DNA of 64,000 bases from Mantamonas sphyraenae STR306 (lineage: Eukaryota > Protista > CRuMs). The notes beneath the pieces are model-generated. The model was not told the DNA's origin. It did no database searches and saw only the letters and a program-made list of their open reading frames with translations. Location: positions 124,001 through 188,000 of the forward strand of contig JAPMXV010000054.1 in the NCBI GenBank assembly GCA_026936335.1, written 5' to 3'. Both the position numbers and the translations under genes were made by a program. Positions 7,696-64,000 of the stretch are shown here, piece after piece (the first letter of the stretch is position 1; each line of letters starts with the position of its first letter).

Positions 7696-9852
7696 TCATC
7701 GCCCTCCCTCAACCACAAACTTGCCCATGAAATCAGGCCGGATCTCCAACAGCCTCTTCAACGTCTCCGACTCCAACGCAGCATCAATCCCATCCTCCGC
7801 CGTTGCCTGGTGAGCCACCGTGTGGATCACGGCTGCCGTGGCACGCGTCCTGGCACCCCCATCCCCTGCCCGCAGCGCACCCAGCACATGCTGCACATCC
7901 ACCTCATCCTGTGCATTCATGCGCAACAGCCTCCAGAATGGCTGCCAGTTGCTGCGTGCCAGAATGGCATCCGACACGCTGTCTCTGGCCCCTGCCAACG
8001 CACGGTTCGACATGGCGATGCTCCGCTTGTACATCCCAATTGCCCCGCTGCGATCCCCAGCAGCCTCCAGGGCCAACCCCAACCAAAAGTACGGCATGGG
8101 CTTGTGTGGAAAGTTGCTGATCACCTTGCGCTGCAGGTACGTCGCCGTGTCTGGATGCATCGTCCGCCCAATCAGCTCGTGATCCCGCATCAGCTGCGCC
8201 GGACTGTACATGTCTGGAAACAGGGTGCGCAGAATGGGCAGGTACTCAGGGTACCGTTCCTTCTTCCGCATCTTGCTGGCCTCCTTGTACCTGTAAAACA
8301 CCATAAACGCATGCAGCTTCCTCGGCACCAGCCCATGCCTCGAGATGGTGATCCAAAACACCCAATCTTCCGATCCCCACGGCATCTGCGGCTCAAACCC
8401 TCCGCTTGCCACCCACAGCTCACGCGAAAACAGACTCATCGTCGGCCACGGCCCCTCCGACAACAGCCGCTGCGGCTGGTACTCCGGCACAATCCACTCC
8501 CCATACCTGTTCTGCGCCTTGAACTCGTCCTTGTAGTACAGCTGGTCCGCATAGATCAGATTCACCGTCGGGTCGCTGTACGCAACCATCATCGCCTCCT
8601 TCAGGTAGTCGTTCCGGATCATGTCGTCGCCGTCCAGGCAGCACACCCACTGCCCCGTGCTCATCTTGATGCCCAGATTCCGTGCTGCCGCTGCCCCTTT
8701 GTTGATGCTGTCGTGCACAATGCGAATGTTGTGATAGTGTGGCCAGTGCGTGGCCTTCAACAGTTGCGCGTGCTCTGCACACCGTTCCGGGGACCCGTCA
8801 TCCACCACCACCAGCTCCCAGTGCTTGTATGTCTGTGCCACCACGCTGTCCATTGCCTCGTACAGATGCTGGCTGTGTCCGTAGCATGGCATGATGATCG
8901 ACACCAGCAACCGTTCGCTGCTACCACTCTGCACCGTCGACACACTCCTTCTACCCTGCACCACCCTCAGTCTCCCCACATGTTCCTCCTCCTTGCGTGT
9001 GTTCCCCCCTCCGCCTCCTCCGTGTGTCTCCTTCTCCGTCCTCACCCCGTCCTTCACCCCGTCCGTCACTCCGCCTTCCTCTCCTCCCTTTCCACCCCCA
9101 CCACCACCCGTCCCCTTGCCCACAGACCCCTTCTCCTCCTTCCATACACCTGTGCTGCGTCTCACCTGCAGAAGCATCGACGATCGCACATTGTCCCTGT
9201 TAAACACCTGCACCGGCGTGTGCAGCGACAGCCTTTCCGCTTCCGACCCAATCCCTGCCTCATTCCCACTCTCCTCTTGTGACACGGACGACGAAGGCGC
9301 ATGCAGAGGCGATGTGCTGCTTGGTCCATGCGCTGACGGCGCGTCCCTCCCCGGCAACTGCCTCCCTGCTGCTCCTGCTTCTGACGTGGCGCTCATGCTC
9401 CTTCCGTCCGACCTCCTGTGCACTCCTGGTGGGCCTCCTCCTTGCCTTCCATTCCCATCTCCTGCCCCCAGGTCGTGTCGAGTGTGGCCCACACTCACAA
9501 AAGGCTGTGCGTCTCCCCGTTCCTCCTCCACTCGAAACAGCTCCGGCTGCTTGCTCACCGGATGGTGTCTCACTGCCGGGCCCTTGCTTCTCATCCACAG
9601 ACTACGCACACCCACAAACACCCCAAACAGCACCAATTGCACCCCACACAACAACACCAACTGCTTCAAGCCGCGCATGAACCACCCTGGTTGCAGCCTG
9701 CCCCTCGTTCCGTTCTCCTTTGTGCTGCCGCTCCCGCTGCTCATTCCTCGCCTTCTGCGCACGTGCACACTCTTCTTGCCCATCCGACGCTTCCGCCGCA
9801 CTGCATGTGGCGATGTACCGTGCTGTTGCGTCCCATCCACCCGCACATCCAC
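7696..9852 (-). CDS. Type II membrane glycosyltransferase family 2 (GT-A) with C-terminal TPR-like helices
   Basis: N-terminal TM (LVLLCGVQLVLFGVFVGV), low-complexity stem, VSIIMPCY...SVVAQTYKHWELVVVDDGS, GAAAARNLGI, CLDGDD (DxD), GGF...SEDW; TPR-like YFWLGLALEAAGDRSGAIGMYKRSI. No intron apparent. Confidence 0.88.
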   Translation of the reverse strand: MDVRVDGTQQHGTSPHAVRRKRRMGKKSVHVRRRRGMSSGSGSTKENGTRGRLQPGWFMRGLKQLVLLCGVQLVLFGVFVGVRSLWMRSKGPAVRHHPVSKQPELFRVEEERGDAQPFVSVGHTRHDLGAGDGNGRQGGGPPGVHRRSDGRSMSATSEAGAAGRQLPGRDAPSAHGPSSTSPLHAPSSSVSQEESGNEAGIGSEAERLSLHTPVQVFNRDNVRSSMLLQVRRSTGVWKEEKGSVGKGTGGGGGGKGGEEGGVTDGVKDGVRTEKETHGGGGGGNTRKEEEHVGRLRVVQGRRSVSTVQSGSSERLLVSIIMPCYGHSQHLYEAMDSVVAQTYKHWELVVVDDGSPERCAEHAQLLKATHWPHYHNIRIVHDSINKGAAAARNLGIKMSTGQWVCCLDGDDMIRNDYLKEAMMVAYSDPTVNLIYADQLYYKDEFKAQNRYGEWIVPEYQPQRLLSEGPWPTMSLFSRELWVASGGFEPQMPWGSEDWVFWITISRHGLVPRKLHAFMVFYRYKEASKMRKKERYPEYLPILRTLFPDMYSPAQLMRDHELIGRTMHPDTATYLQRKVISNFPHKPMPYFWLGLALEAAGDRSGAIGMYKRSIAMSNRALAGARDSVSDAILARSNWQPFWRLLRMNAQDEVDVQHVLGALRAGDGGARTRATAAVIHTVAHQATAEDGIDAALESETLKRLLEIRPDFMGKFVVEGGR

Positions 9853-57232: not shown

Positions 57233-60200
57233 TCACTCTCCTGCGCCCAATTCGCCTCGAAGACTTTCGTGAAAGTCGTTGAAGGATGACTCGAGGCTGC
57301 TCTGGCCCTCAAAACGGTCTTCGAGGGCAATCTTGGGCAAACTCAGCATCTTGGCCGTCTCTGCGTCCAGGGTGCGCATTGGCGTGTGTACGCTCAACAC
57401 ACGTTGCTTCACCGTTTCTGTCGAACGCAACGGCTTCTGTTCGGGCCACGCAAACGCATTGTTCGACGTGCCCGAGTGCGTCAGCCGCGGTGTCATCAGC
57501 AACCCATACGTCTCCTCCTCATCGTCCTCATCGCCCCTCCTGTGTTGACGTCGCTGGCCCGGACTCAACAAGCGGCCATGCGAGTCTCGGCTCCTCGGCC
57601 TCTCCTTGCGTTGCCTCTCCTTCTGTCGCGATCGTTCCGCCTGCACGCTCTTGCGCGACAGTTTTGGCACGGGGGGCTTGGAGCTGGCTTTGATGCGCCG
57701 TTTGGTCTCCTCCTTCGGCTGTCGCTTCTGCCCGCCACCATCACCATCACCATCACCATCACTGTCGTTCTCCCGATCACCCTCCTTCTTTGCAGGAGTG
57801 CCACCCGCCGATGATGCGGATGCGTTGGCCATGGATTGCTTGTGCAGCCTGTGGTCAAACTTGCGGCGTGTGACAATGCGCATGAGAGTGCGATGCTCTT
57901 CGCCTCCGCCACCCACGAGCATGGCAAGTGTCTCGTGCAGCAGCTGGTGCCTGCGCTTGTGAAGTGTGGACGATTCGGGATTGCCCGAATCTCGTCGTGC
58001 CATGATGCTGCGTGCCTGTGGCGACCTCACATCCTGCAACAGATGCTGTACCAACGGACTTGTTGCGTACAGTCGATTGCGACGCGTGCGTACGCCGCGT
58101 TTGTTCCTCCTGCTCACGTCCGAGCTGCCCTTGCTGCTCTCCACGCTGCCAAAGTGACTCGTGAACATTTCCGGATCAAACAGAAGCACCACAAGCGTGT
58201 CCATCTGGTACAAGGAGGCGATGCCGTCGTCCGACTGCGTCCACCGCGGAAAGTTGCTCTTGAACAGCGCCTCCAGCGACACCCGCAGACACAGCAGCAC
58301 CATCGGAATGAAGCGCAACATGGTCCTCGTCTCACTGGTCATGCTCGCCGTCAAGTCATCGTACGCCTCAAACATGGCTACAAACAGCTTTTGCAGCGCA
58401 CGCGTACGTTGCCTCTCTGCTTCTTCTTCCTCCTCCTCCTCCTCCTTCTCATCGTCATCGGCATCATCGCCGTCTCCTCCCTCGCCCTCTCCGTCGTCTT
58501 TCGTCTGCTGCCTGCGCCCCGTGCGTCGTTTTAACCCACGTGCAGAGTCGTCCTTGAGGAACGAATACAGTTTGCGGCTGCGACGGTCATGCAAGGTGAT
58601 CCAATACATCAGATTACCCGTGAGCGAGATCAAACGGGCCATCTTGGCCGACAGCAGCACCTCCTGCAACAGTTTGGCTTCTTCCGCACTCAACTGCGTC
58701 GACGGATACATCGCCGGCGGGAATCGTTCCGAGAATGCCTCTTGGATGGCAGTGACCTTTGCCTGGTCACTGTCAAAGCCCCGTTCCAGCTCTGCACGGA
58801 TCTGGGCCACCTCTTTCCGCAGATGCACCGTGTGTCGCTCCCGCAGGGTCTTGAGCGCCTGCTCCTCTTCATCCACATGTTCATCCAACCAGTTCTCCGT
58901 CACCACCGGCTGCGCCGATCCGTCGGCCATCCCTGGACTGTGGTGGCCATCAAACAGCAACCCGTCCAGGCTGTACAAGCCGCTGTGGTCGCTCAACGAC
59001 GACGACGACGTGACTGAGGAGGAGGAGGAGGAGGAGGAGGATGAAGAGGACGACGACGACGTCGATGTGGCCGATGATCCAGCCATTGTGCTTGTCATTG
59101 CATGGCCCATGCTGCTGCTGTGTGATTTCCCTCCCGCAGAAGGGTGTGGTGTACGCTGTGGTGTGCCTCGTCGTCGTTGTGGCGTGCCCCGTTCCCCTCC
59201 TTGTTGCGAGCGCAACGTGCTGCGCATCGTGGCCATGTCGTCCTTGCGCTTGCGTGTGATGTTCAGCGCACTGGATGCCGTCCCTGGCCGCATGGAGGGC
59301 CTAGGAGGCGTCTGGTTGCTGCCACCACTGTCCCCTTTGTTGTTTGCCTGTGTGCGTGGCGTGGCGATGGTTGTAGTAGCCGTGTTGTCCACGTTGCTGC
59401 GAGTCTTGCTCGCCGACGCCAGCAATCCGCCTCGCTTGGCTGCCTGTCGCTCCCGTACGCTGCTCCACTTCCACCGTTCTGCCTCCTCCCTCTCCTCCTC
59501 CTCTCGCTGCTTCTGTGCCCGCTTGCGCTCCTGCGCCCGTGCACTGAGCGCATACCGCGGCGCAGGCTCCTCTTTCTTCCCTTCCATCTGTTTCCTCAAC
59601 CTCCGCTTCTCCTGCGCCTTGACCCTTGCCTGCTCCATCGCATTGCCTGGCGTCGCTGTGCGCACGTGTCCCGCTGTCGTGTGTGGCCTCTGCTGCTGAA
59701 GTTGTGTCCTGCTGGGTGTCCTGGGCGTCTTGGGTGTCGACGATGCCCTCATCATCCCCTGTGCCGTCGACGCACGCTGCTGCTGTGGGCTCGCCTGGTG
59801 CCGCATTGCAGATCGTGTTGTGGTGGATTCCATGCGTTCGTCGTTGCTGCTGTGTTGCATCACCTTGTGTGCGTGTTGCAAGCGCAGTGTGCGTTCGCTG
59901 TTGTCGTTCATCATCCGCGTCTGTGTGCGCTCCCTGCTACGTGCCAGTTTGTCCTGTCGTTCCTGCAATGCCCTCTCCATGGCTTCCAGATGTTTCAGGT
60001 CCCGGTTGGGTGACATCACTGTGCGTCGTTCGGCACGCTGCAGGCGGTGCAGCTCCGCAAACACGCCGTCCGTCTCACGCAGCTTCGCCTGAAAGTCCGC
60101 CTGGCCACGTTCGTAGCCGTAGTGTGGATGCACGGGCGAGTGCAACGTCTCTCGCATCTGTTCCCTGTGCTTGAGTTCGTTCTTGCGCCTTGCGTCTGCA

Positions 60201-61861
60201 AACTTGCGCTGCTGCACGTACTGCGAGTGCCGCGTGCCCAGCATCATGGCCGCTGCCTCCGCCGCCTGCATCACCTCCTCCTCGTCCGTCTCCCTGTCCA
60301 TCGACCCGTTGTTCAACATTTCCAGGTAGTCGTCCACCCCTTCGCTCTCCTCCACGTGATGCTGGTTGTACGGAGGCAGATACCGTTCCACAATGGTGCC
60401 CAGATCCGGCACCGATGCCTTGTCTGCCACACGTCGTGCAGACTTGGCCTTTGCTGATCGGCCTGCCAGGTCCGACAGGATGCCCACGCCTGTCTGTTCC
60501 CCCGCCGTGTTGCCTTTCTTCTTCTTCGTCCTTTTGGACGACGACGACGATGACGTGCCACCCTGTGCAGAGTGCGCTCCCGCACTCTCGTCCCGATCGC
60601 TGTCACTGTCACTGTCACTCTCACTGCCACTGCTGCTGCTGCTGTCACTCTCGCTGTCGCTGCCGCTATCCATTTCGCCGTCTGCCTGTGTCTGTGTACC
60701 GTTGTCGTTGTGGTGCGCAGCAGCGTCGCCCGTCACCCGTCCGTCGCCTTCGGCTGCCACGGCGTGGCTCTGTGCCACTCGACGTGTCCGTTGCGCCTGC
60801 TGCTTGCGTTTGGTGCGTTCACGCATCTGGCGTTCGACCATGGTGACCAGCGGGATGCCCGGGGCGCGGTCTTTCTGGATGCTGCGCTGAAGTTTGGCCT
60901 GCGACAACTGCTGCAGTTTCTGCTTGGCACGCATGGCCTTGACAGACGCCGCCTTGGCGGATTTGATCTTGTCATAGGTGCGCAGGGCGTGTGGGTTGAG
61001 TGGTTTGGGCGGCACGTCCTTCTTGAGCTGTGCAGGCGTGCCAAACTTGGTTTGGATGCGCGTGTTGCCAAACATGGCGTGTTCGGTGATGGTTGTCTCT
61101 TGCTCCTCGGCCAGTCTGCGCTCACGTGCCTCCTCTTCCTCCAATTCAATCTGTGCCAACGTGGCGCTGTTGTCTGTGGCCTGCATGGCGGCCAACTCCG
61201 ACTCCAACGACGGCAGATCCAGCCGCTCGGGAGGGTCCACCAGGGCAAAGTGCAGCATTTTGTTGGTAAACACCTTGAGATGGGCATACTGCTCCTTGTA
61301 CTTGTCCGAGTGCAGGTACCGGAAGTACTTCTGGTCCTGCGCCTGGGGCTCGATGTGCACCGCGTCTTCCACCCAGCCGTGGGCACGATAGAAGGGCACA
61401 ATGGCGTTTTCCGACACATTGATGTTGCTCAAGACCGCTTGGATGTTCTTGTTGGTGGGTCGCACGCCCATGTTCTCCAGGTAGTGGATGGCGTACTTGG
61501 TTTTCACCAGAGCCGTTGTTTCCTCGTTCAGCCGGACCCCGTCCTTGAACTGGGTGTCTCTGCTCTCGTAGGGCTTCAAGGGCAACTGCAACGCAACCTC
61601 GGCACTGCGCTTCTGGTTCAGCTTCCGAGCCTCCATCTCGCGTGCGGAAAACTGATGCCGTGTGCCATCCTGCTCCGTGGCAAACGTCACCGGCGCCGCG
61701 CGAATCACACTCCGCTGGATGCGTTTGCCCATGCCCATCGTCCTACGCAACGAGTCATCCTGCACGAATGGCTGGCCCGTGCGTGCTTGGAACCAATCGT
61801 TGGCACGCACGAGCAGATCGTCTGCAGAATCAAACGCGGAAGACTCGTCGGTGCTGGACAC
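57233..61861 (-). CDS. Large mostly disordered hypothetical protein with a C-terminal helical domain (possibly PPP1R36-like); true start uncertain
   Basis: 1542-codon open frame; globular segments near the N-terminus and around LMYWITL...FIPMVLLCLRVSLEALFKSNFPRW...LFDPE...TSPLVQHLL. Confidence 0.55.
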   Translation of the reverse strand: MSSTDESSAFDSADDLLVRANDWFQARTGQPFVQDDSLRRTMGMGKRIQRSVIRAAPVTFATEQDGTRHQFSAREMEARKLNQKRSAEVALQLPLKPYESRDTQFKDGVRLNEETTALVKTKYAIHYLENMGVRPTNKNIQAVLSNINVSENAIVPFYRAHGWVEDAVHIEPQAQDQKYFRYLHSDKYKEQYAHLKVFTNKMLHFALVDPPERLDLPSLESELAAMQATDNSATLAQIELEEEEARERRLAEEQETTITEHAMFGNTRIQTKFGTPAQLKKDVPPKPLNPHALRTYDKIKSAKAASVKAMRAKQKLQQLSQAKLQRSIQKDRAPGIPLVTMVERQMRERTKRKQQAQRTRRVAQSHAVAAEGDGRVTGDAAAHHNDNGTQTQADGEMDSGSDSESDSSSSSGSESDSDSDSDRDESAGAHSAQGGTSSSSSSKRTKKKKGNTAGEQTGVGILSDLAGRSAKAKSARRVADKASVPDLGTIVERYLPPYNQHHVEESEGVDDYLEMLNNGSMDRETDEEEVMQAAEAAAMMLGTRHSQYVQQRKFADARRKNELKHREQMRETLHSPVHPHYGYERGQADFQAKLRETDGVFAELHRLQRAERRTVMSPNRDLKHLEAMERALQERQDKLARSRERTQTRMMNDNSERTLRLQHAHKVMQHSSNDERMESTTTRSAMRHQASPQQQRASTAQGMMRASSTPKTPRTPSRTQLQQQRPHTTAGHVRTATPGNAMEQARVKAQEKRRLRKQMEGKKEEPAPRYALSARAQERKRAQKQREEEEREEAERWKWSSVRERQAAKRGGLLASASKTRSNVDNTATTTIATPRTQANNKGDSGGSNQTPPRPSMRPGTASSALNITRKRKDDMATMRSTLRSQQGGERGTPQRRRGTPQRTPHPSAGGKSHSSSMGHAMTSTMAGSSATSTSSSSSSSSSSSSSSSVTSSSSLSDHSGLYSLDGLLFDGHHSPGMADGSAQPVVTENWLDEHVDEEEQALKTLRERHTVHLRKEVAQIRAELERGFDSDQAKVTAIQEAFSERFPPAMYPSTQLSAEEAKLLQEVLLSAKMARLISLTGNLMYWITLHDRRSRKLYSFLKDDSARGLKRRTGRRQQTKDDGEGEGGDGDDADDDEKEEEEEEEEAERQRTRALQKLFVAMFEAYDDLTASMTSETRTMLRFIPMVLLCLRVSLEALFKSNFPRWTQSDDGIASLYQMDTLVVLLFDPEMFTSHFGSVESSKGSSDVSRRNKRGVRTRRNRLYATSPLVQHLLQDVRSPQARSIMARRDSGNPESSTLHKRRHQLLHETLAMLVGGGGEEHRTLMRIVTRRKFDHRLHKQSMANASASSAGGTPAKKEGDRENDSDGDGDGDGGGQKRQPKEETKRRIKASSKPPVPKLSRKSVQAERSRQKERQRKERPRSRDSHGRLLSPGQRRQHRRGDEDDEEETYGLLMTPRLTHSGTSNNAFAWPEQKPLRSTETVKQRVLSVHTPMRTLDAETAKMLSLPKIALEDRFEGQSSLESSFNDFHESLRGELGAGE

Positions 61862-61980
61862 TTTTCCTCCTTTTGTGTTTGCTGCCCTTGTGTGTGAGTG
61901 TGTTCATTCTTCCTATTTGCAAAACAGCGCGCCGTCGCACACAATCGTCACACCACGTATGTTCGACACACACACATCGA

Positions 61981-62200
61981 AAAAAGTCACGATCAGGTCA
62001 CAACGGTGTTAGTTGACGGCTAGGGGGGGGGGAGGTGGAACGGGCGAATCCGGGCAAATCAAATTCCCACAAACTCACATTTAGAATGTGTTTGGGTCGT
62101 GTGTTTCGTCCCAATGTGTGTTTGTGTGTGTTTGTGTGTGCGATACAGACGCGGTTGTTCTCAGGTGACCTGCTGCAGGTGTGGAGGCCGATGACCAAGA
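61981..62200 (-). ncRNA. Candidate Fanzor omegaRNA scaffold / element right end
   Basis: Lies immediately 3' of the Fanzor stop. Minus-strand hairpins TTGGGACG-aaacaca-CGACCCAA, AAACACATT-cta-AATGTGAGTTT and GTCAAC-taacacc-GTTGTGAC, then a T5 run. Boundaries are inferred. Confidence 0.4.
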
Positions 62201-64000
62201 AGGACGTAGCAAAGTCCAACCAGCCCAATGTTGAGAGCACCATTTGCATCACGATCAACGCAGCGTCGACGTTTGTCGGTGGCTGGATTGATATTGCTTG
62301 CAAGTGACATGGCAGTGCCGTTCACGGTGGTTTGGTGTGTGCGAAGAAACGTGCTTGTGGAGCAGTCGCATCGCTTCAACCTGCCAAGCGGGGCGTGTGA
62401 GCCTAGATCTGGTGCATACTGCATCTCTGCACCGCAGTTGGCACACATCTTGGACGTGAAGAACTCGTTGCAGCGCAGGACGATGTGTGTCCTTGCTAAG
62501 TACTCCACCCCTTTCTTGAAGCCTCCGCTCTCGCCTCGCCATGAAACGGTGCCCACGATGTAGATGACCATCCTTGGTTTCTGATTGTCCCGAGGGCGGG
62601 ATGCATTCGCCAACAGCTGCTGCGTGTGTGCATGCCGTCGCGTCCTGTGCATCTTGCCAATGCTGCCGTCAGGGTCTCCTCCTGCCGCTGCATGCCTTGC
62701 GAGGCTGTGTGTGTGGTCATTGACCTTTTGCTCGTGGTGTGGGAGGGTGGGGACATTCCACCATCGCCCAATGATGGTGTTTGCCCCAGCGGTTGAAGGC
62801 TCCAGCTGCGCACACACAGTATTGGTCTTGAACTTGCCCGGATCAATAAGACACAATTGAATACGTGTCTCCAGAAGTGTCTTGGTGTCCATGGTTTCCT
62901 GCTCCGTGAGCGTGGGGCGCAGGCGCAGGGTGTGGAGGTCCACGACGGCCGGGTCTCCCGACGAGAGCGTGACACCTGCATTCCGCAGGCCATTCAACAC
63001 TTGCCGTGCGCCCAGAAGTTCGCCAACGCGATCGTTGCCCAGCAGGTGGCACAGCCGCAGCACCGTGATCAGTTTGTCCTTTGGTTGTGCTTCCTCTCGC
63101 AGTGCATGCTTCAGCAGTGGGATTGCGTACGCAAGGCTGCGTTGGTGTGGCTCCACAAGCTCGAGTAGCGAAAAGAGTGCATGTTGGCGTGCTTTGGGAT
63201 CGGTCCAGAACGCCCTGAGCATGCTCATTACCCCTTGCGTGTGCCAACCCTGCGCCTTGCAGACCTTGCCCGCAACGACCATGGTTCCGGTCATGGTGGC
63301 CAACTTCCTGGCAGATAGATTGGCCACTCGTGGGCAAAGAAGAAACAGCAACGCAGGAGCAGCGTTTACACGTTCGCGTTTCGCCTCGCCAGACAAGGGG
63401 TCACCAATGAGGGTGTGTCCGGCAAACCGTTCCAATTGCTCAACCACCTTGGCTGCTAACGAGTGCTGGTCCTGATTCTCAAACGCCCATTCCATGATGG
63501 CCTTGTTGGCTCCTGGCACATTGTCGGGGGCATTTCGCACCGCTTGGGCCACATCCATGTAATCGTCGCCCAGCCACGCCGAGACCTTCTTGGATCGGAG
63601 GATGTGCAGCTGCGCGTGCGGGGCAATGCATATGTCAGGGCTAAGGGATCGATCCTTCTTGGGGAGCCCCACGTTGTGGCCATGCGCAACTGCGAGAGAG
63701 AGCTCGTTCCAGGCAGCAGCGTCTTGCGCCTGTGATTCTCGCCCGAAAAAATGCGCAGCGTCGCCGAGGACAGAGTTGTTGAGCTGCGTGCGCAGATTCT
63801 CATTCGCATCATGGAAGAACCCGTCTTGCTTGCCGTTTCGCTTTCCAAACTCTGCTTTCAGCTTGATCAGACGTTGCTCCACCGCAATTTCGCCCTCGCC
63901 AAGCTCGTTGGCAATGGTGCGGACGGCCAGGTCCTGCGGCAACTCCTGCATGGCAGACAACTCTGACTTCAGTGCGGTTGCGAGCTGGTAACGAGAAAGG
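62000..64000 (-). mobile_element. Putative Fanzor-carrying transposable element (right part only)
   Basis: Fanzor genes are normally transposon cargo. No transposase, TIR pair or TSD can be verified inside the window. Confidence 0.45.
62161..64000 (-). CDS. Fanzor: Fanzor (eukaryotic TnpB-family) RNA-guided DNA endonuclease, N-terminus truncated by the window
   Basis: RuvC-I LIDPG (D codon 62842-62844); VIYIVG at the canonical RuvC-II position; rearranged catalytic E in NEFFTSKMCANC (62464-62466); second zinc pair RCDC; RuvC-III DRDANGALNI (62248-62250); tail LGHRP. The frame is open to the window edge and intronless. Confidence 0.88.
   Translation of the reverse strand, partial: LSRYQLATALKSELSAMQELPQDLAVRTIANELGEGEIAVEQRLIKLKAEFGKRNGKQDGFFHDANENLRTQLNNSVLGDAAHFFGRESQAQDAAAWNELSLAVAHGHNVGLPKKDRSLSPDICIAPHAQLHILRSKKVSAWLGDDYMDVAQAVRNAPDNVPGANKAIMEWAFENQDQHSLAAKVVEQLERFAGHTLIGDPLSGEAKRERVNAAPALLFLLCPRVANLSARKLATMTGTMVVAGKVCKAQGWHTQGVMSMLRAFWTDPKARQHALFSLLELVEPHQRSLAYAIPLLKHALREEAQPKDKLITVLRLCHLLGNDRVGELLGARQVLNGLRNAGVTLSSGDPAVVDLHTLRLRPTLTEQETMDTKTLLETRIQLCLIDPGKFKTNTVCAQLEPSTAGANTIIGRWWNVPTLPHHEQKVNDHTHSLARHAAAGGDPDGSIGKMHRTRRHAHTQQLLANASRPRDNQKPRMVIYIVGTVSWRGESGGFKKGVEYLARTHIVLRCNEFFTSKMCANCGAEMQYAPDLGSHAPLGRLKRCDCSTSTFLRTHQTTVNGTAMSLASNINPATDKRRRCVDRDANGALNIGLVGLCYVLLGHRPPHLQQVT

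Follow-up and report, generated by a model that had tools for sequence, protein, structure and literature searches.

The window analysed here, a stretch of 64,000 nucleotides of contig C54 of the assembly of the deep-branching protist Mantamonas sphyraenae (G000:C54:124001-188000), ends within a gene whose product is, judged from its motifs and a structural model, a Fanzor, i.e. a eukaryotic RNA-guided nuclease of the TnpB type. M. sphyraenae is diploid, belongs to the CRuMs and has genes that are 'mostly mono-exonic' (PMC10492846), and the assembly that we searched holds 25,061,354 bases in 78 contigs. C-numbers (C2, C17, C22 and so on) denote these contigs, the Fanzor studied here is referred to as the C54 copy, and positions beyond the window are given as L051, to which 61499 is added to obtain the window position. 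The gene comprises the following features:

L051 6036-5631, minus strand: exon 1 (outside the window)
L051 5630-5380, minus strand: intron 1, 251 nt (outside the window)
L051 5379-5132, minus strand: exon 2 (outside the window)
L051 5131-5060, minus strand: intron 2, 72 nt (outside the window)
L051 5059-662, minus strand: the whole of exon 3, running from beyond the window edge into the window
62161-64000, minus strand: in-window part of exon 3 (stop-free frame and sibling comparison)
L051 2883-3236, minus strand: in-frame 60-bp minisatellite, just outside the window end
62851-64000, minus strand: probable WED/REC region of the Fanzor module, extending about 370 nt beyond the window edge (Atlas features)
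62161-62850, minus strand: RuvC-I (IDPG), the RuvC-II Gly and the alternative Glu, the C4 zinc finger (TNB), RuvC-III (RD) and the stop codon (motifs, alignment and model)

From position 64000 to the TGA at 62161-62163 the frame is free of stops, giving 612 codons inside the window, and it continues outside to 1,483 codons in total; comparison with sibling copies adds two further coding exons. The three exons measure 406, 248 and 4,398 nt and are separated by introns of 251 and 72 nt with GT-AG borders; together they encode a protein of 1,683 residues, just the last 612 of which the window contains. The initial annotation had described an intronless frame in an intron-rich genome and had asked whether the upstream part carries stops or frameshifts. 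Both introns lie outside the window, the genome is one of mostly mono-exonic genes, and extension along the contig leaves the frame intact, with no stop in 1,683 codons. The 60-bp minisatellite of the C54 copy is young, and the C17, C22, C34 and C70 copies have different in-frame repeats in their linker regions.

Contigs of run X3, which is tentatively labelled DNA but is RNA-seq-like in its uneven depth and splicing, skip intron 2 exactly and join exon 2 to the letters of exon 1. Because these contigs have the introns removed and are identical to the C54 copy, it is this very copy that is transcribed and has both introns spliced, on the basis of single contigs of one study. The spliced contigs, the open frame and DNA contigs of two Illumina-like runs, which match the C54 copy and span its right junction into host sequence, largely refute the view that the gene is a pseudogene, a contaminant or an assembly artefact. 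We regard this view as very improbable even though the copy has neither a transposase nor a left terminal inverted repeat (TIR); host genes, moreover, lie on both sides of it.

The motifs quoted in the initial annotation are all located in frame: the RuvC-I motif IDPG with the catalytic D at 62842-62844, a Gly at the canonical RuvC-II site (62551-62553), the alternative catalytic E at 62464-62466 within NEFFTSKMCANC and six residues ahead of the first zinc-finger Cys, the RCDC motif, the RuvC-III motif DRDANGALNI with its D at 62248-62250, and the G.RP tail, which reads GHRP. All three acidic residues of the rearranged active site are thus present, and 126 residues separate the RuvC-I D from the E. 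The Fanzor signature consists of DPG and an alternative Glu with Gly or Pro at the canonical site (PMC10711439, PMC10530073), and the C54 copy has DPG, the alternative Glu and the Gly. It reads D-X128-TS-KM-CxxC..CxC-X36-RD, in agreement with the published motif D-X(125,275)-[TS][TS]-X-X-C4 zinc finger-X(5,50)-RD of Fanzor and TnpB proteins (PMC3627910). Since D-X128-TS falls inside the published spacing, the compact-REC2 subfamily that had been proposed for this protein is ruled out; at 1,683 residues it is nearly three times as long as the usual Fanzor of about 600 residues (PMC10530073) and, as it stands, is not a compact tool. The gene sits beside the right end of a eukaryotic transposon, the position that the OMEGA criterion calls for.

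When the C-terminal 450 residues are aligned in 21 rows (20 genomic copies and one database fragment, 19-82% identical to the C54 copy), the Glu, three Cys of the zinc finger and the RD of RuvC-III do not vary, and at least 90% of the rows have the RuvC-I Asp; conservation at identities down to 19% argues that the motif set is not due to chance. The ratio of nonsynonymous to synonymous substitution rates (dN/dS) of the RuvC-TNB part is 0.12-0.18 against the C17, C22 and C57 copies (dS partly saturated) and by this measure it is under purifying selection. Pfam gives a weak Cas12f1-like TNB match alone (E 3.4e-5, last 239 residues). The single C54 sequence finds no match in PDB, and the family profile finds one chain, the mimivirus Fanzor2 ApmFz2 (9b0l, E 2.8e-4). 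With an AlphaFold model (confidence score pLDDT 77.6), Foldseek ranks 1-6 are PpFz1 (best E 4.6e-4) and SpuFz1 (E 1.2e-3), followed by Cas12, and the top 16 chains in the VIA comparison are exclusively Cas12, TnpB or Fanzor (best Z 13.6, root-mean-square deviation 6.2, 197 aligned). The structural check proposed in the initial annotation therefore recovers a RuvC fold of the Cas12/TnpB/Fanzor class, and the published motif, the profile, Foldseek and VIA all support the layout of RuvC and zinc finger described there. As the closest structures are Fanzor1 proteins and the host is a DDE transposon without an IS607 serine recombinase, the protein is most likely a Fanzor1, as initially suspected, rather than a Fanzor2, and to regard it as a candidate programmable nuclease is reasonable.

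Like the Fanzor1 proteins SpuFz1, PpFz1 and GtFz1 (PDB 8gkh, 9cf0, 9cer; PMC10432273, PMC11423790), the C54 copy has (i) DPG in RuvC-I, RD in RuvC-III and a RuvC fold, (ii) the Gly together with the alternative Glu six residues before the C4 zinc finger, (iii) introns and a conserved non-coding 3' end that reaches to the transposon end, and (iv) a DDE-transposon host with a TA-type target. Unlike the solved Fanzor1 chains, which have about 600-730 residues, it has about 950 extra N-terminal residues, which include a linker of repeats and a domain that is probably FEN1-like, and its host lineage is CRuMs. No full-length relative outside the M. sphyraenae genome was found by word-index searches, a full HMMER scan, metagenome patterns or phage tblastn; the HMMER scan returned a single TNB fragment of 216 residues, from a contig of 1.5 kb, and a further HMMER match, P0001, was rejected as a homologue because it is a repeat-driven chance match. 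The 500 residues ahead of the RuvC module have Atlas features like those of DUF8286 clusters from Mucoromycota and giant viruses (0.91-0.92, few features being shared), and DUF8286 is found together with the TNB domain among the structural matches; we treat this resemblance as a lead only. In total, the layout and the active site described in the initial annotation stand and its compactness, intronless gene and intron-rich genome do not, while the upstream exons, the probable FEN1-like domain, the IS630/Tc1-type transposon and the junction scars had all escaped it.

The N-terminal domain

The extension contains one further feature:

L051 about 5670-4760, minus strand: probable FEN1/5'-exonuclease-like PIN domain (motif order and sibling profile matches)

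Across copies the first ~350 residues contain, in this order, a hydrophobic strand followed by D, a second such strand-D, (E)AD(D/E), DxD and helix-G-x-x-D. 5' nucleases of the FEN1, XPG and T5 types show the same motif order, which EXO1 and XRN share with the C54 copy; compared with all of these the C54 domain is very divergent, has the first Glu replaced and is fused to a Fanzor. If, as we presume, its acidic positions correspond to the metal ligands of FEN1, six of seven ligand positions are acidic by motif reading and the remaining one, the Glu of EAD, is Ser. The motif is SAD in the C54, C17 and C57 copies and PAD in C22; distant copies keep EADD with DxD. The paralogue at C34:213985 matches Pfam 5_3_exonuc_N (PF02739) at E 1.6e-6, below the cut-off, and members of the alignment give weak matches to phage exonuclease, PolI and Xni. 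A model built from three distant copies alone finds residues 48-112 of the C54 open frame at E 1.3e-5, the stretch scoring 10.7 bits compared with 2.5 bits for the best of 200 shuffles, and Atlas features of a sibling point to XRN_N (0.87-0.89). With a dN/dS of 0.08-0.32 (dS partly saturated), the stretch is, as far as such ratios tell, under purifying selection.

Several results weigh against a 5' nuclease at this position. Pfam returns no PIN match for the C54 copy's own N-terminal sequence. The PIN model of a sibling has low confidence (pLDDT 62.7, first strand missing), and in its Foldseek search ranks 1-2 are 5' nucleases (9l56, ExoIX), with E-values of 0.13-0.34; the VIA comparison of this model gives no clear fold match. 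The Glu of EAD, finally, is the position that the C54 copy has lost. On balance, the motif order and the sibling profiles make a PIN/5' nuclease fold likely, and we hold it with some assurance; membership of the C54 copy in the 5' nuclease family is probable, and catalytic activity of its domain is close to evenly balanced, marginally on the doubtful side. Alternatively, the domain could be a degenerate or non-nuclease module, for DNA-end binding or as a scaffold, at least in the C54 subfamily, with the Fanzor still cutting. The SAD and PAD variants and the lack of significance of the fold matches speak for this possibility, which is compatible with the homing considered below; the remaining acidic positions, the selection on the stretch and the EADD, DxD and 5_3_exonuc_N match of distant copies speak against it, and we rate it as somewhat unlikely. 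In the portions of the literature that we covered we found no description of a Fanzor joined to an XPG, PIN or FEN1 domain; the papers that bring Fanzor and FEN1 together are engineering studies or reviews. A natural Fanzor with its own 5' nuclease would thus be an apparently undescribed architecture, of relevance to editors that bias repair.

The transposon family and its ends

The element that carries the C54 copy has the following features:

61910-64000, minus strand: in-window part of the element; the whole is G000:C54:185910-191995, 6,086 bp
61910-62160, minus strand: 251-nt 3' non-coding region, candidate scaffold of an omega RNA (conserved to the element end in the C54, C17 and C22 copies)
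61910-61935, minus strand: right terminus, bearing the motif GCGCGCTGTTTTGCAAA-N5 of the family, an imperfect inverted repeat of the left end (sibling comparison)
61908-61909, minus strand: 3' target-site dinucleotide, GA in the C54 copy (comparison of the flanks of 24 copies)
61887-61907, minus strand: host flank directly past the element, predicted to supply the guide (spacer) of the omega RNA (siblings diverge abruptly here; unconserved among copies)

The search for other genomic copies that the initial annotation had suggested finds, with a family profile, 58 Fanzor loci, mostly open frames of 1,300-2,250 codons. The C2, C57 and C11 copies are ~98% identical, and the ends that they share enclose a DD34E transposase of the IS630/Tc1 type. 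Genome-wide, 17 of the 19 DDE_3 (DD34E) matches sit upstream of a Fanzor in the same orientation, at a distance of 5.7-10.2 kb, where about 0.014 would be expected for each; the pairs comprise C2, C57 and C11, inside shared ends, and 14 more loci at which the transposase lies upstream. The DD34E transposases at G000:C29:71522 and C57:42615 are those without a downstream Fanzor match. From these sequence data we take the host to be a family of IS630/Tc1-type cut-and-paste transposons. Three other contexts were rejected: (i) IS607 with Fanzor2, as the ends enclose no serine recombinase and the link is to DD34E instead, (ii) a superfamily with a fixed target-site duplication of 8-10 bp (hAT, MuDR), as the lengths of the duplicates vary and two copies have 2 bp, and (iii) retrotransposition, as introns are kept, there is no poly(A) tail and a 72-nt mini-element has both ends.

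Similarity among siblings ends abruptly 100-255 nt past the stop codon, in the C54 copy at window position 61910, and a GCGCGC-TG-TT-GC-AA-like subterminal motif occurs in every subfamily. TA follows 17 of 24 right ends and the other seven are followed by GA, TT or TG, one mismatch from TA; the element boundaries of distant subfamilies may be 1-3 nt off. The C22 and C57 copies are clean insertions with a 2-bp TT duplication (GG-TT/CAGG...GGAA/TT, slashes at the junctions). In intact siblings the TIRs match at 11 of 15 positions in register (positions 6-20) and the outer 5 bp are unlike. The C54 element is non-autonomous: it is without a transposase, and the outer ~26 nt of its left end including the left TIR are gone, as shown by comparison with a fragment on C43 that is 99% identical and retains the left-end motif intact. 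Because the left TIR is lost, this copy is probably stranded and able to act in trans only.

The C43 fragment (G000:C43:404701-405337) is 99% identical to the left 620 nt of the C54 element and is joined to other sequence. An X3 contig that contains the shared stretch together with letters of the other locus is far deeper than the Fanzor contigs, contig depth being a poor measure, and the left end of the element may act as promoter of a chimeric transcript there. Further debris of the family includes a mini-element of 72-78 nt (G000:C46:127782-127853; L049:3782-3855), in which a left end is fused to a right end via a shared TGCGACG; it is flanked by a 10-11-nt duplicate and resembles 'ghost' loci but is too short for the 251-nt 3' region. 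Short left-end remnants without a matching right-end motif lie at G000:C1:240951-241091, C6:58116-58227 and C44:212594-212607, and broken or truncated copies with short open frames of 120-580 codons at C68:191896-193197, C4:296716-298068, C46:152992, C43:180194, C29:87017-87385 and C51:218748. The left ends of the C29:139255, C4:91152, C70 and C34:213985 copies were not found.

Mariner/Tc1 elements with Fanzor1 are already known: PGv-1, PUl-1 and PUl-4 (PMC3627910) likewise combine a transposase with a Fanzor, have TA targets and include Fanzor-only non-autonomous copies. The M. sphyraenae family differs from them in its short, imperfect TIRs with mismatched outer 5 bp, in a relaxed target (TA, TT, TG, GA) and in an extra duplicate of the right flank in most readable copies; PGv-1 has a separate endonuclease gene, unlike the probable fused 5' nuclease described here. 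The papers that we covered do not describe such a size, the probable fusion, a host among the CRuMs or scars of this kind in a DDE element.

Junction duplications and a proposed model for homing

Left junctions were read in 9 copies among the 58 loci, eight of which were scored against a null, with the copy at C44:42866-47851 in addition. In 6 of the 8 tested copies, and in 7 of 9 when the C44 copy is included, the left junction repeats the bases with which the right flank begins; the duplicates measure 12 nt in C54, 12 in C11, 10 in C46, 9 in C63, 8 in C2 and 7 in C17 (null P <0.0002 to 0.01). The scars are polar: the right ends of the scarred copies are exact, whereas bases of the left end are missing in four of the six, and the joins of the duplicates often pass through microhomology. 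In the C54 copy the duplicate (L051:6497-6521) is exact over 12-14 nt and extends to ~24 nt with one substitution and one 1-nt gap, this longer version being mismatched at position 11. No readable left junction keeps more than 10 perfectly matching nt past the dinucleotide. In the C44 copy ~450 nt of right flank are duplicated on the left, 424 bp of them exact (L048:816-1255 and about 7936-8387), and in the left-hand duplicate 17 nt, beginning 8 nt after TA, are replaced by 6 nt, the rest being identical; this long duplicate may be an assembly artefact.

Combining the junctions with the predicted nuclease, we lean towards a model in which the C54 protein and its siblings are Fanzor1-type homing nucleases: they would cut the vacated site, copy-back repair would restore the element, and one-ended repair would leave the scars. 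In this scheme (i) the transposase of autonomous siblings would excise and insert elements at TA-like dinucleotides, (ii) an RNA transcribed from the right end and on into flanking host sequence would guide the Fanzor to the re-closed empty site, (iii) bases of the left flank and target-site duplication would serve as target-adjacent motif (TAM), with the cut ~10-20 nt inside the right flank, and (iv) repair from the sister chromatid or homologue would copy the element back (restorative homing). If the distal broken end alone invaded, it would copy the element from right to left, and the product would be end-joined to the TAM-side fragment, leaving the right end exact and the left end ragged, with a short stretch of right-flank sequence repeated on the left, as in C54; re-cutting by the Fanzor followed by one-ended copy-back would thereby explain the polarity of the scars. 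For Fanzors that have been characterised, the distance between TAM and cut is 9-21 nt (PMC10432273), and the limit of 10 matching nt would reflect survival from re-cutting, since longer full matches would be cut again.

Alternatively, a Fanzor1 may be active on the IS630/Tc1-type element and the duplications may arise from transposase and host repair alone, by one-ended or alternative-end strand transfer, in which the right end would join exactly and end-joining would resolve the left end, or by gap repair after excision. As the outer 5 bp of the element ends mismatch, transfer of the left end could be inefficient, and the exact 424-bp duplicate of the C44 copy has TG as its last bases, directly followed by an intact left end with CAGG, which resembles alternative-end transposition. 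However, an excision break sits at the element border and so cannot by itself supply right-flank sequence to the left fragment, whereas a re-closed site that is cut again inside the right flank can. Moreover, the short duplicates vary and terminate in microhomology, the indel of the C44 copy lies 8-25 nt inside the flank and away from the TA, and the same pattern is found in Fanzor1 Helitrons, whose transposase is unrelated (PMC3627910). We consider an origin from transposase and repair alone unlikely.

These Helitrons provide the closest parallel. The Fanzor1 Helitron2 elements CRe-1, CRe-2 and CRe-3 of Chlamydomonas have intact 3' ends, truncated 5' ends and duplications of ~7-19 bp, sometimes of hundreds, and Bao and Jurka found the pattern of fixed 3' and ragged 5' ends with duplications in Fanzor1 Helitrons but almost never in their Fanzor-less relatives (PMC3627910). 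As in the M. sphyraenae copies, the duplications start right after the target motif. CRe-1/2/3 are rolling-circle elements, and the pattern was interpreted there as one-ended transposition; the M. sphyraenae host, in contrast, is a DDE element, and the same scars in Helitron and DDE hosts point to the Fanzor as common cause.

A third possibility is that the protein is an RNA-guided DNA binder or no longer RNA-guided, i.e. nuclease-dead or repurposed and kept for another role in transposition. A structured omega RNA was not detected: the 251-nt region folds no better than shuffles (z -0.42), has no compensatory pairs across the C54, C17 and C22 copies and has no match in Rfam. This, together with the failure to find a homologue outside the genome, could be taken to favor repurposing. 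D/E/D is nevertheless kept even where copies have diverged strongly, conservation of the 3' region runs precisely up to the end of the element and the scars lie within the expected cut window, and we regard repurposing as improbable. A right-end RNA that reads into the flank as guide is the known Fanzor architecture (PMC13565253), and by analogy a guide RNA of this kind is expected here.

Besides the weak folding of the 251-nt region, the following points count against homing. Only 9 left junctions are readable, the presumed TAMs are loosely conserved (CCATA, ACATA, CGATG, CAAGA, CAATG, AGGTT, TGGTT), part of the C54 duplicate (ATGAAC and a CA repeat) is a recurrent motif in the genome, and the long C44 duplicate itself resembles alternative-end transposition. 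The junction test scored right-flank sequence at left junctions, and the RNA data are contigs of one probable mRNA run, X3.

Restorative homing by TnpB in IS605/IS607 elements, with a right-end RNA guide, a cut at the vacated site and copy-back, matches the scheme proposed here. According to a 2026 review it has been demonstrated for bacterial TnpB/IscB only (PMC13565253), and these systems rest on experiment, whereas homing in M. sphyraenae is proposed from genomic scars. We further suggest, tentatively and as a rather unlikely extension of the homing model, a eukaryotic homing machine that is RNA-guided and combines two nucleases: the Fanzor would cut, the fused 5' nuclease would resect by trimming ends and flaps and thereby favor copy-back repair, and one-ended copy-back would re-insert the element. 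On this reading the polar duplications would be a direct genomic record of Fanzor activity in a native host, and the variable duplications of the Chlamydomonas Fanzor Helitrons would also be explained. Since the genome offers ~58 loci, young autonomous copies (the 98% identical trio), clean as well as scarred junctions and a cultured host, and the scars predict the position of the Fanzor cut, homing is directly testable in M. sphyraenae.

Host surroundings

A co-oriented host gene of 1,542 codons (window 57233-61867) starts ~45 nt past the right end of the C54 element, and a transcript contig reaches ~61866; the predicted guide therefore overlaps the promoter region of this gene. The C54, C11, C2 and C63 copies each follow a co-oriented host gene, lying on its stop codon or no more than ~30 nt behind it, and expression of the Fanzor could be driven by read-through from this upstream gene. 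AATGAA or ATGAA is often found beside the left flanks of the same four copies and may be a 3'-end signal of M. sphyraenae. The host gene left of the C2 copy (L057:597-1517; G000:C2:225396-226316) appears, by its motifs (HSWG..D), to encode a peptidoglycan-binding protein with an M15-type peptidase, which possibly serves to digest bacterial prey.

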